From Blastocladiella emersonii ATCC 22665 (Eukaryota > Fungi > Blastocladiomycota), in NCBI GenBank assembly GCA_025594325.1, contig JANHCV010000003.1, positions 2,170,001 to 2,234,000 of the forward strand: a DNA stretch of 64,000 bases. The letters are read 5' to 3'. Below the pieces are notes generated by a model. It saw only the letters and a program-made list of their open reading frames with translations. It was not told the DNA's origin and searched no databases. Below are positions 37,893-43,749 of this stretch, in pieces. A program made the position numbers and the translations under genes. Position 1 is the stretch's first letter. Every line of letters begins with the position of its first letter.

Positions 37893-38275
37893 TCAGGGCA
37901 GGGTCAGTTGAGCGGTCCAGGGAAAGTACGGCACGAACGAGAGATCTTTGAGGTAGGGGCGCAACTCCTTGTAGACCTTGAAGACGAAGCGTGGGTGCTC
38001 TTTAGGGACGTCAACATTGGACACGAGCTGCGCCTCGATCGCCTCAGCAATCGTCAGAAAGTTTTCGCGGGTGTCGATGCCCACCGTAGACGTCGTAACA
38101 TTGCCGCTGGCGGAACGCATGTTGTGAGCAAGCTTTTTAAGCAAGTCGTCCATGGAGGGATCAAACTTGCCGTCCTTGGCGCCGTAGTCGCTCCTGACCC
38201 ACAAGCACTCGATGGCGGGGGTCGCGTCCCAACCAGGACCGGCAGGCGGAAGGAGGAAAAAGTTATCCGGCTCGC
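37893..38275 (-). pseudogene. DUF4470-family copy C: only the 3' end remains, joined to the Fanzor element
   Basis: FFLLPPAGPGWDATPA..SDYGAKDGKFDPSMDDL..DTRENF..VYKELRPYLKDLSFVPYFPWTAQLTLP aligns to copy B FVLLPPVGPGSDTTPA..SDYGSHDGLFDPSMDDL..DTRKDF..VYKEINMYLRRLVFTPFFPSTAHLNLP. Homology stops abruptly near 38275. Confidence 0.85.
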
Positions 38276-40470
38276 CCGTCATCGACTCGATTGGGCCGTG
38301 GCCCGCCAGCAGGCCGACCTCGGCGTGCTGGCCGCGGTCAACGGTAGCACGCTCCGTGCTCGTCGTCGTCGCGCCGCCAAGACCGCCGGCCATGAGCGCA
38401 GGCGCAGGCGCAGGCGCCGGTTCCCAAACCCGTACTCGACGCCTGGCCGCGGCGGCCCTCGTCCTCACCCGTCACCGCGCGCGCGCGCCGCTGCCCGCAA
38501 GGCGGCCAACTCGACGGCGTTCTGGGCGGATCGTCGCGCTGCGGTGGCCGTTGAGACGATGCCGCGCCGCCTGCCGCGCGAGCTCCAGGTCTCCAAGGCC
38601 GAGCGCGAGGCGCGCGTCCGCATGGCCAAGCGCCGTGTCCGCGCCTACGCCAAGATCGACGTCCAGGGCCTGTCGTGGCTCGACCGCCTCGTTTGTCTTC
38701 AACGTGCCCGCGACTACTTTGTCGACCGCGAGCTCGTGTTGGCCTCTAAGCCGCGCCCGCGCATGGTCCCCAAGCTCGAGGTGCGCGGCCGGTTCTTCAA
38801 CGTGCCGTTCAAGACGCTCATGGCCGTGGCCGGCATGCCGACCCACGGAAGCCGGGATCCAACATCGCCAACGCGGGGGGTGCCGTGGCCCGCCCGACCC
38901 GTCGCTGACTACAACATCATCGCCGCCAATGATGATCCTGTTGCAGTCGCCGCCGCTCGTGCCCGCGTCGCCGCGTACAAGCTCCAGGACGGCCGCACCG
39001 TCAAGGCCTACTGGGACTACCTGTTGCACTGGTCGTCCATGTACGTCAAGCACTCGCTGTGCTGGCGCCTTCAACCTGGCGCGCAGCCCGTCAACCAGTT
39101 CATCGGGTCCATCAAGATGGACTGGTACTCTGCCCGCGTCCCCATGCACCGCGACAGCATCTACCCGTGCGAGCGCGCCCAGTCTACGCCTTCTACTCGT
39201 GCACTCTCGTCCGCCGAGCGCCTCGCTCTCGCACTTGCACTCAAACCTCCCCTCGTACCTCCTGTTGTCGCCCATAATGACCCACCCCTCGTCGTCTCCC
39301 ACCCTCCAGATCATCGCGTCGCTCGTCGCCGCAGCGCCGGTACCAACATCCACGCTGGCGACATTGACATGGCCAAGGGCATCGACCGCATCACCTTTGT
39401 GGACCCCGGCGCCAACTCGCCCATCACGGCGTTCACAGTCGCGCTCGTCCTCTTCTTCCACATTGTCGCCGTCCTCAAGCGCATCGCCACGATCCACGCC
39501 AATGGCACGCTCGACGACGACGCCCGCGCCGCCAAACTTGACGCGGTGCGCCCAATCCTGCTCGACATCGCCATGACCAACAAGGGCATCAACCACCGCT
39601 TCGACCAGATCTTGGCGTACGAGTTCAACCACAAGACGGGCGCCCGCCTCAAGTCGAGTCGCTCGCGCATGTGGCGCACCGAGTACGGCCTCGACGACCA
39701 CGACGACGACCGCTCGGCGGCGTTGCACCCGGCCGCCGACCCTGCCACCTACCTGCACGCCAAGGTCGACGCCAACGCGGCCGCCGAGGCCGCGACGCTG
39801 ACCGAGGCGCGGCGCACGCGCGTCGGCCGGCTCAGGTTCTTCACGTTCGGGCTCGCGCAGAAGATGTTCGACAAGCTCACGCACGCGTTCAAGGGCGCCT
39901 ACATCCTGACCGGCCACCAGTTCCACTACGGCGGCGTTCGTGTTCATCGTTGTGGTCCTGTTGCCAAGCTCGTCGACCAGCTCGTGCGCCATGGCACCAA
40001 GATCGCCCGCGTCGACGAAAACTACACGTCAAAGCGGTGCGCCGTCTGCTCCGCGCTCTCCACGCCGCAGCAGCGCGCCGACGGCAAGTGCAACCTTGAG
40101 ACGGGCCCGCGCACACCGTGGGGCACCAAGCACTGCCCGCGGTGTCGCGCGACGTTCGGCCGCGACAAGAACGCCGCCTTCACCCTGCTGCTGATCCACG
40201 CGCATCGCCTTCGAATCGCTCAAGCTCAAGGTCCTGTCGCCTAGGTCGTCATGTTGTGCTGTGGTGTTTGTCTCGTCTCCCTCCCTCCCTCTCCTCATCC
40301 CTCCTCTCTCCCAAACGGTTCCTTAGTGTATCATCTGCCCCCGACGTGAGACGGCCCCTGCGGCTCAGGTGCTTCATTGCGCCTTTGGTCCTACGGGACC
40401 CCTCGTGGTGTTGATCGCATTGGTTACGGCCAATGTGGTCACAGGTCTGTGGTCAACAGATCTTGTGTAG
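38275..40470 (+). mobile_element. Non-autonomous or stand-alone Fanzor element; no transposase or TIR recognised
   Basis: The left boundary is the abrupt loss of DUF4470 homology. The right boundary is inferred from the end of the hairpin array, before the PRP4 3' UTR. Confidence 0.55.
38559..40244 (+). CDS. Fanzor (eukaryotic TnpB/IS200-605-derived RNA-guided RuvC endonuclease), Fanzor1-like
   Basis: RuvC-I FVDPG (D at 39402), RuvC-II VDENYTSKRC (E at 40017), zinc finger CAVC...CPRC, RuvC-III RDKNAA (D at 40164), and WED-like FIGSIKMDWYSARV. The frame stays open upstream through the 38275 junction, so the true start is uncertain. Confidence 0.88.
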   Translation: MPRRLPRELQVSKAEREARVRMAKRRVRAYAKIDVQGLSWLDRLVCLQRARDYFVDRELVLASKPRPRMVPKLEVRGRFFNVPFKTLMAVAGMPTHGSRDPTSPTRGVPWPARPVADYNIIAANDDPVAVAAARARVAAYKLQDGRTVKAYWDYLLHWSSMYVKHSLCWRLQPGAQPVNQFIGSIKMDWYSARVPMHRDSIYPCERAQSTPSTRALSSAERLALALALKPPLVPPVVAHNDPPLVVSHPPDHRVARRRSAGTNIHAGDIDMAKGIDRITFVDPGANSPITAFTVALVLFFHIVAVLKRIATIHANGTLDDDARAAKLDAVRPILLDIAMTNKGINHRFDQILAYEFNHKTGARLKSSRSRMWRTEYGLDDHDDDRSAALHPAADPATYLHAKVDANAAAEAATLTEARRTRVGRLRFFTFGLAQKMFDKLTHAFKGAYILTGHQFHYGGVRVHRCGPVAKLVDQLVRHGTKIARVDENYTSKRCAVCSALSTPQQRADGKCNLETGPRTPWGTKHCPRCRATFGRDKNAAFTLLLIHAHRLRIAQAQGPVA

Positions 40471-40490
40471 ATGCCCTGCGCGTTTTGTGT
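40313..40490 (+). ncRNA. Candidate Fanzor omegaRNA (scaffold plus flanking guide)
   Basis: Follows the Fanzor stop and a CT-rich tract (40270-40312). Four consecutive hairpins at 40367-40384, 40387-40400 (UACG loop), 40412-40441 (13 bp, UACG loop) and 40442-40466. Boundaries are inferred. Confidence 0.6.
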
Positions 40491-40564
40491 ACTCCATTCA
40501 TACATATCAAGTCATTCATACGTGACGACGGATCAATCCACACGCGCAACGACCACCAGCCCAC

Positions 40565-43072
<2,508 letters not shown>

Positions 43073-43749
43073 GGTGCAGCGAGTTGCAGCAAGTGCCGAG
43101 CGTTGGTGCGTGTGCGTTACGTTGCGGGGAGGCAGCGACGGGGAGAGCAAACGAAATGAGAGCGGCGACGTGACGTGCACGCGAGTGGTCGCGCACGCGT
43201 CGGGCCTCTCCTTCAGCGCTTCGCTCCGCCGCGAACCACGCTCGCTCTCCATGCACGCCCGCCCCTGCCCGGGAGCGGCCTAATGTAACTGCAATGAATA
43301 CTGACTCACGTTTGGCAGCCGCGACGCGCCCGTAAACGCTACGGCGCGACCGTGGTCCTGTCCGGCGCATTGCTCTCAGTCATCCACAAGATCATGTCGC
43401 ACTCTGTAAAGGTTCGAGAAATGGATGCGGGCGGATTGCGGATTTCTGGCATCTGCCGCGCGAGTCATCGCAAGCAAATCTGGCCGCACAATCCGATCGC
43501 CGTGACTCCTGCACGCTTGAACTTGGATAAGCCCGGCTAGGCCAAGACGAGTCCAGATGTTGCCTGTGCATCCCCATGACCGCGGTATACGAGCCCTCGT
43601 ACGTGCAAACTGCCAAACTGTTGTGTCCTCGCACTGACACGGTTCTCGCCGCCCTAGGCGTGGTACAATCTTGACCCGTTCCACAACTCCGAGATGCGGG
43701 AACCAGATGTCAACGATTTCCTGAGCACAGTATCGCGCGTCACGTCCCA

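Follow-up and report, generated by a model that had tools for sequence, protein, structure and literature searches.

Within the 64,000-nucleotide stretch of the Blastocladiella emersonii ATCC 22665 genome analysed here (contig JANHCV010000003.1, positions 2,170,001 to 2,234,000 of the forward strand; hereafter the window), a gene at 38559-40244 codes for a Fanzor1, which is a RuvC nuclease of the eukaryotic TnpB type. Fanzors, as counterparts of TnpB and Cas12 in eukaryotes, are under development as compact genome editors. This assignment is secure because the evidence from the family profile, the predicted fold and the catalytic and zinc-binding columns combine. The gene probably sits in the relic of a non-autonomous, low-copy element, with a reading frame that is still open, drifting, probably impaired and hit by CpG transitions. 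The units referred to throughout are as follows.

38349-40504, + strand: repeat unit (element relic) with the Fanzor1 gene; 2,156 bp, with sharp identity borders to positions 11007-13143 of L001, the sister-copy locus on another contig.

38559-40244, + strand: Fanzor1 coding sequence (CDS); 561 codons plus stop, no internal stop or frameshift, recognised by Pfam, the family profile, the AlphaFold2 (AF2) model and fold matches.

37737-38558, + strand: non-Fanzor upstream part of the long open reading frame (ORF), made up of an antisense gene fragment, a junction of about 78 bp and the 5' leader.

The initial annotation had assigned the gene to the TnpB/Fanzor family on the basis of motifs, and several lines of evidence bear this out. 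The long ORF matches Pfam PF07282 (Cas12f1-like TNB) at residues 747-815 with 35.3 bits against a cut-off of 26.3 (E 1.3e-8), and there is a weak, sub-threshold match to the NCBIfam model guided_TnpB (23 bits, cut-off 100). A search of PDB sequences with the single protein returned nothing relevant; only a family profile reached Fanzor1 structures. This profile is a 22-member alignment (A4) that was searched against PDB sequences, and the residue counts given below refer to its other 21 members. It matched SpuFz1 (8GKH) with E 2.4e-15 over profile positions 76-560, nearly its full length, followed by PpFz1 (E 9e-11, positions 166-558) and GtFz1 (E 1.5e-9). Matches to TnpB, Cas12f and Fanzor2 were limited to the C-terminal 60-145 positions, those to Fanzor2 and TnpB being confined to positions 471-556. 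The AF2 model built on A4 has a mean pLDDT of 72, with most of residues 270-555 at 80-96. In Foldseek the top four matches were SpuFz states, then other Fanzor, Cas12 and TnpB structures, and all PDB fold matches with E up to 0.001 were TnpB, Fanzor or Cas12 nucleases. VIA-align gave 8GKH as the best structural match (Z 14.4 over model residues 77-553), and fold matches to the RuvC/TNB region had Z 9-14 over model residues ~250-553. The comparison by hidden Markov model (HMM) and AlphaFold that had been proposed initially thus places SpuFz1 first by both profile and fold.

In terms of classification, the protein has the RuvC-like fold with an inserted zinc ribbon (TNB) that characterises the TnpB/Cas12 superfamily, and it is encoded in a eukaryotic nuclear genome among ordinary eukaryotic genes, as expected of a Fanzor. 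It belongs with Fanzor1 rather than Fanzor2, the similarity being nearly full-length and including the part before RuvC (WED/REC in SpuFz1). A profile search of 1.84 billion representatives found 52 relatives in all. When 30 of these were looked up, the named ones were all B. emersonii proteins and the rest metagenome proteins. B. emersonii itself has at least 18 diverged gene models of the family, in clusters with less than 50% mutual identity. With 12-16% identity to the solved Fanzor1 structures, the gene represents a very divergent Fanzor1 lineage in a blastoclad.

The residues that characterise the active site and the zinc finger are listed here together with two further positions that have changed in the window copy.

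39402-39404, + strand: RuvC-I aspartate D282, in DPG (VDPGAN at 39399); aligns with SpuFz1 D383 and is kept in 19 of 21 relatives.

39912-39914, + strand: G452, at the place of the lost canonical RuvC-II glutamate; Gly in 20 of 21, aligned with the Gly of SpuFz1 'VVMGDW'.

40017-40019, + strand: alternative (rearranged) RuvC-II glutamate E487 (VDENYTS at 40011); aligns with SpuFz1 E541, kept in 20 of 21.

40038-40145, + strand: CxxC...CxxC zinc finger of TNB, formed by C494 and C497 (CAVC at 40038) and C526 and C529 (CPRC at 40134); the cysteines are present in 20-21 of 21.

40164-40166, + strand: RuvC-III aspartate D536 (RDKNAA at 40161); aligns with SpuFz1 D606, kept in 20 of 21.

39117-39125, + strand: TDG motif, here M187-D188-W189; T in 18 and G in 19 of 21.

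40182-40184, + strand: T542, replacing the family Asn (second N of NAAxN); N in 20 of 21 and in SpuFz1.

According to the HMM alignment, D282, E487 and D536 correspond to residues 777, 935 and 1000 of the 8gkh MBP fusion and hence to D383, E541 and D606 of SpuFz1, the residues that coordinate Mg in that enzyme (PMC10432273); by this profile alignment the window protein has the complete D-E-D triad. Fanzors have the canonical RuvC-II glutamate substituted and the functional glutamate rearranged downstream (PMC10530073), and here E487 is located 35 residues downstream of G452, immediately ahead of the zinc finger. All catalytic and zinc-binding residues are retained in the window copy, in columns on which 19-21 of the 21 relatives agree. 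The DPG, VDENYTS, CxxC...CxxC and RDKNAA motifs, which had been read initially as an intact triad with a rearranged glutamate and a zinc finger, are therefore present as described. The segment FIGSIKMDWYS (39099), likened at the same time to the Fanzor1 F.G.I.TDG.S WED motif, is also in place and does contain the TDG motif of Fanzor1, but in a mutated version (MDW for TDG). TDG is found at the aligned place in L001, in SpuFz1, in PpFz1 and in P0003 (H9P43_006016), a 51%-identical paralogue, in agreement with 18-19 of the 21 relatives.

The ORF from which the gene was recognised (37737-40244, + strand, 835 codons, TTG start) is present in the ORF list and encodes 835 aa; as had been reported, it has no stops. 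Its first 274 codons are non-Fanzor sequence. The ATG at 38559 (MPRRLPRELQ) is the first within the repeat and yields a 561-aa product, and the public model P0001 (H9P43_003608) has the same start, so the real gene is most likely 38559-40244. Part of the product of the long ORF is identical to H9P43_003608 of Blastocladiella emersonii ATCC 22665, located on a 2.64-Mb contig; this model splices out residues 204-259 (39168-39335, an in-frame 168 nt) as an intron. The stretch is conserved at the protein level in P0003 (51% identical; DPPLV.S.PP.HRV.RRR.AG) and we therefore read the gene as lacking an intron at this position. In the AF2 model, residues 204-259 form a disordered linker. The GC content at third codon positions (GC3) is 0.84 in the Fanzor frame (0.58 at the first two positions, GC12), compared with a GC3 of 0.64-0.93 in neighbouring genes, which upholds the earlier description of its codon use as host-like.

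The gene is part of a larger repeat, which consists of a 210-bp leader, the ORF and a 260-bp tail and is 91.3% identical to L001:11007-13143 over 2,178 columns (blastn). The 5' leader (38349-38558) is non-coding, contains no in-frame ATG and has been copied with the gene, with 97.6% identity to L001. The stop codon is followed by a less well conserved segment.

40245-40310, + strand: CT-rich spacer that follows the stop and is poorly conserved (~49% identity to L001, indels).

In the L001 sister copy, a 29-bp deletion (window 38784-38812) shifts the frame. The public model for this locus, P0002 (H9P43_001163; L001:10001-12882), fuses a complete Abhydrolase_3 gene to the Fanzor pseudogene and bridges the 29-bp deletion by means of an intron, and is thus an annotation chimera. 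In three DNA runs from one sample, Logan contigs are interrupted within the element and contain variants seen in neither the window nor L001; the strain therefore has no fewer than three sequence types with identities of 90% or above. These runs give Logan contigs only, and their depths are not copy numbers; we estimate a low-copy element with about 3-4 copies at this level of identity. Same-strain contigs join 40166 to 40348, omitting 181 bp (the ORF end and the CT-rich spacer), and other DNA-run contigs part from the window after 40451 (window 40400-40451), from which it follows that the genome holds one or more additional, rearranged relatives of the 3' region. Of the sister copies for which the initial annotation suggested a genome-wide search, the frameshifted L001 and further variant contigs came to light. 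When the two ends of the element were compared by blastn with the window and six paralogue loci, L001 was the sole other copy detected.

An inverted-repeat search of 38200-40650 revealed no terminal inverted repeats (TIRs) joining the borders, no target-site duplication (TSD) was recognisable in the flanks of the window copy or of L001, and ORFs between 26 and 50 kb of the window contained no transposase domain. The initial remark that neither a TIR nor a transposase lay nearby is therefore confirmed, and the term 'non-autonomous' suits a repeat that is sharply bordered and recurs, as the sister copy, on another contig. Because this repeat comes without a transposase and without TIRs, we regard it as a non-autonomous low-copy relic. 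It has neither the TIRs of ~30 bp nor the shared TA duplication of SPu-1-like elements and for this reason was not filed as an SPu-1-type element. At the right end (40495-40527) the 9-mer CATTCATAC recurs 10 bases (TATCAAGT plus 2) into the flank; the sister locus has no repeat of the CATTCATAC type, and a target-site mimic or chance are candidate meanings. A weak Pfam match to Plavaka (KDZ-type transposase) was seen at L004:301-1527, ~2.5 kb upstream of the Fanzor1 paralogue P0009.

The pattern of substitution in the CDS resembles neutral drift. There are 96 differences between the window CDS and L001, distributed over codon positions 1, 2 and 3 as 33, 28 and 35. The nonsynonymous fraction is 0.672, as against 0.707 +/- 0.045 in a neutral simulation with the observed spectrum (P = 0.22), and in the same simulation the chance of encountering no stop after 48 neutral substitutions was 0.32. 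The Nei-Gojobori dN/dS for this pair is 0.67. No purifying selection on the window-copy ORF was detectable in the comparison with the sister, and the mark of an active transposable-element copy is in this respect lacking. A codon-position comparison with L002 was set aside as uninformative, being near saturation. When replacements were polarised with P0003, 17 were derived in the window copy compared with 12 in the frameshifted sister, and a third copy in the DNA runs, where visible, sides with L001 against the window. Five of the window-copy replacements fall at conserved family positions, three of them near-invariant.

T187M: conserved position; T in 18 of 21 members.

G189W: conserved position; G in 19 of 21 members.

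I451T: conserved position, beside G452; hydrophobic in all of the other 21 members.

R478H: conserved position; R or K in 16 of 21 members.

N542T: conserved position; N in 20 of 21 members.

At the last of these codons, position 40183 is A in L001 and in the variant contigs, giving AAC (Asn). We infer that the window copy is no longer maintained by selection, and, with M187, W189, T451, H478 and T542 at conserved positions, its product is probably impaired. The earlier view of the gene as 'active or recently active' consequently stands only in part: the ORF and the triad are intact, but purifying selection is not detectable and five conserved positions have been replaced.

The spectrum of changes is also informative. 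In the window lineage 48 of 66 apparent GC-to-AT transitions are at CpG, compared with 14 of 32 in the sister lineage, CpG accounting for 41% of C-dinucleotides. The observed/expected ratio of TpG/CpA in the element (1.15) is the highest in the window, and that of CpG (1.28) is slightly below the 1.37 of the sister. A signature of the type left by repeat-induced point mutation, at CpA, was rejected because the transition excess falls at CpG. Such a CpG-to-TpG excess is the footprint that would be expected of 5-methylcytosine deamination on the window copy and suggests local cytosine methylation of this repeat copy. The copy would then have been hit mainly by CpG-to-TpG transitions, in the manner of a methylated, silenced repeat, and may itself be silenced by methylation.

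The tail of the element contains a candidate guide RNA scaffold.

40340-40504, + strand: candidate omegaRNA scaffold, a hairpin stack that reaches the right repeat border; 91-95% identical to L001.

The minimum free energy of the sense strand in this segment is -65.8 kcal/mol (z -2.88, 0 of 200 shuffles as stable), compared with z +0.08 for the antisense strand. Folding of the whole 260-nt tail gave only z -1.6, the signal being contained in the last 165 nt. Sense asymmetry is also seen in the tail of the sister copy (z -4.2), and the tail at L004 (P0009) has sense-specific structure with z -4.0, the sole comparable signal among five other paralogue loci. The asymmetry between strands fits predicted stems rich in G-U pairs and favours an RNA transcribed with the polarity of the ORF over a hairpin in the DNA. 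Rfam gave no match at its E-value threshold over 37500-41000. The 3' tails of the other paralogues could not be aligned (MAFFT for L002; blastn for all five loci) and most are not obviously structured. In characterised relatives, the nuclease binds an omegaRNA transcribed from the 3' end of the element that carries its gene, and a flank-derived 3' guide together with a short target-adjacent motif (TAM) directs DNA cutting. Since the structured tail sits at the 3' end of the element and ends at the border, as Fanzor1/TnpB scaffolds do, the hairpin stack may constitute an omegaRNA scaffold; if it works as in the TnpB/Fanzor model, the flank beginning at 40505 would supply the guide.

Several observations weigh against an impaired, drifting relic. 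The ORF is intact and both the triad and the four zinc cysteines are retained, so that residual or full activity is possible. The neutrality test is of low power, with its differences spread over two lineages, one a known pseudogene, and the dN/dS is nominally below 1. Furthermore, conservation of the CDS (94.2%) falls slightly short of that of the 5' leader (97.6%) and the last 100 nt (95%). Since no more than two copies can be aligned, the true ends of a transposon may differ from the repeat borders. The omegaRNA at 40340-40504 is predicted only; the stem pair 40412/40441, which is U-A in one copy and C-G in the other with both sides changed, is weak evidence of compensation because both changes are CpG transitions in the fast-mutating copy and could have arisen by chance. 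The CpG observed/expected ratio is ~1.3 across the whole window, with no general CpG depletion, and any methylation would therefore be local.

Some of these properties favour a functional Fanzor1 system, in which the 561-aa protein and the 3' hairpin RNA would act as an active RNA-guided nuclease and, through homing or retention in the manner of TnpB, would still help the element to survive or multiply, with a transposase acting in trans to mobilise it. The intact ORF with its full triad and zinc finger, the host-like codon use, the nominal dN/dS and the well-conserved 5' leader and 3' end are all in line with such a system, as are a tail that is structured on the sense strand only, up to the exact repeat border, and the existence of several near-identical copies on different contigs. 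We nevertheless consider it unlikely, if deserving of serious attention. The substitutions are indistinguishable from neutral drift, the derived replacements outnumber those of the frameshifted sister, and T187, G189 and N542, which SpuFz1 and 18-20 of the 21 relatives retain, have been replaced. The CpG-transition excess is specific to the window copy, no transposase, TIR or TSD was found, and the copy number is far below that of the active-looking SPu-1 (42 loci and 134 ghosts; PMC10432273).

The initial annotation had also raised the idea of domestication, according to which the gene would be a host gene for a Fanzor-derived nuclease or DNA-binding protein with a cellular role, no longer mobile. 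The lack of a transposase or TIR and the host-like codons are compatible with this, and some of the 18 or more diverged gene models in B. emersonii might be co-opted. The gene nonetheless lies inside a repeat whose non-coding flanks were copied along to another contig, the sister copy is a pseudogene, purifying selection is not detectable and conserved residues have been lost. Domestication is thus not borne out and seems very unlikely. The idea that a long GC-rich ORF shows these motifs by chance, with no TnpB/Fanzor gene present, can be dismissed. GC-rich DNA does yield long ORFs in all frames and the single-sequence PDB search gave no relevant match, but chance is ruled out by PF07282 above its curated threshold, by a profile that reaches three Fanzor1 structures at nearly full length, by Foldseek and VIA-align matches led by SpuFz1 and followed by TnpB/Cas12-type RuvC nucleases, and by 52 homologues with conserved catalytic columns.

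Like SpuFz1/SPu-1 of Spizellomyces punctatus (8GKH; PMC3627910, PMC10432273), the window element is a single-ORF unit of ~2.1-2.2 kb in a zoosporic fungus (the SPu-1 prototype measures 2.1 kb; Bao & Jurka 2013, PMC3627910). The alignment runs from before TDG to the C-terminus, the span of the WED, REC, RuvC and zinc-finger parts of SpuFz1, and the two share the Mg-binding D/E/D, Gly in place of the canonical RuvC-II Glu and a structured 3' end where the SPu-1 omegaRNA lies. In contrast, identity between the proteins is only ~12-16%, and in the window copy T-D-G has become M-D-W, while Thr takes the place of the Asn that aligns with SpuFz1 N612. SPu-1 has 30-33-bp inverted repeats and a TA duplication; the window element lacks the former and shows no recognisable TA duplication. 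The SPu-1 total of 42 loci and 134 ORF-less ghosts (PMC10432273) compares with ~3-4 close copies here. RNA-guided cleavage has been shown for SpuFz1.

PpFz1 of Parasitella parasitica (9CF0; Z 12.1), which has the TDG motif, and GtFz1 of Guillardia theta (9CER; Z 8.9) are also of the Fanzor1 clade, but both are larger proteins with extra insertions, and the match to GtFz1 covers mostly the C-terminal RuvC/zinc-finger part. TnpB (ISDra2, 8H1J/8EXA; IS200/IS605) and Cas12f share the RuvC core and TNB (E ~1e-5 to 1e-7, Z ~10), and TnpB has its guide RNA encoded at the 3' end of the element, for which the window offers a candidate only. TnpB differs in that the C-terminal domain alone is alignable, in keeping the RuvC-II Glu (Gly here) and in being prokaryotic with a TnpA partner. 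Fanzor2 (ApmFz2, 9B0L) is likewise a eukaryotic/viral TnpB homologue with the rearranged glutamate, but its match is to RuvC/TNB only (E 1.5e-5, profile 471-542; Z 11.1, residues 248-553). Fanzor2 is linked to IS607-type elements, and the N-terminal two thirds of the window protein align with Fanzor1 and not with Fanzor2.

No named Allomyces protein was among the 30 of the 52 profile relatives looked up. Allomyces belongs to the same phylum as Blastocladiella, the Blastocladiomycota. Three Fanzor1 families (AMa) are listed for Allomyces macrogynus (Bao & Jurka 2013, PMC3627910), and Fanzor1 was therefore already known in blastoclads, as in fungi since 2013. Among the papers searched, none names Fanzor in connection with Blastocladiella.

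The right end of the element is located 61 bp from the stop codon of a convergent kinase gene (40565-43252, - strand), which has at least one intron and a long acidic/RS-rich N-terminal region. The element is probably in or beside the 3' untranslated region of this gene. On the other side, a gene fragment at 37896-38270 (- strand) ends ~78 bp from the left border of the element. It is a truncated copy of residues 289-413, the last 125, of the product of gene 34115-35356 (- strand; 54%, E 6e-40, tblastn). The missing N-terminal 288 residues were not found beyond the element (tblastn), and a simple model of insertion into this gene copy was therefore rejected. A third, weaker relative of gene 34115-35356 is present at 32378-32728 (- strand), and these relatives alternate with DUF4470 genes (35661-37412 and 31469-33547) in a lower-GC tract. 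The neighbours at large are ordinary eukaryotic genes (kinases, G-alpha, glycosyltransferase); an endogenous giant-virus origin was rejected, since these host genes are of similar composition.

With regard to the organism, a tentative and rather improbable proposition is that B. emersonii harbours an old, lineage-specific Fanzor1 radiation that has spread or persisted without TIRs, TSDs or a recognisable transposase. If true, either the family would move in a way that has yet to be described, such as homing driven solely by the nuclease, or some of its members would be domesticated; the hairpin tail, with its sense-specific structure, would then represent a new type of omegaRNA. The copy-specific CpG excess hints at local repeat methylation in a fungal genome that is otherwise not CpG-depleted. 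For the family as a whole, divergent Fanzor clades each add to the diversity of proteins and guide RNAs. The window copy illustrates that in GC-rich genomes activity is poorly predicted by an ORF and a triad that are both intact, because its frame would remain open by chance in about one third of cases and near-invariant residues have already been lost. In mining the B. emersonii genome, better-preserved paralogues such as P0003 are preferable to this copy as candidates.

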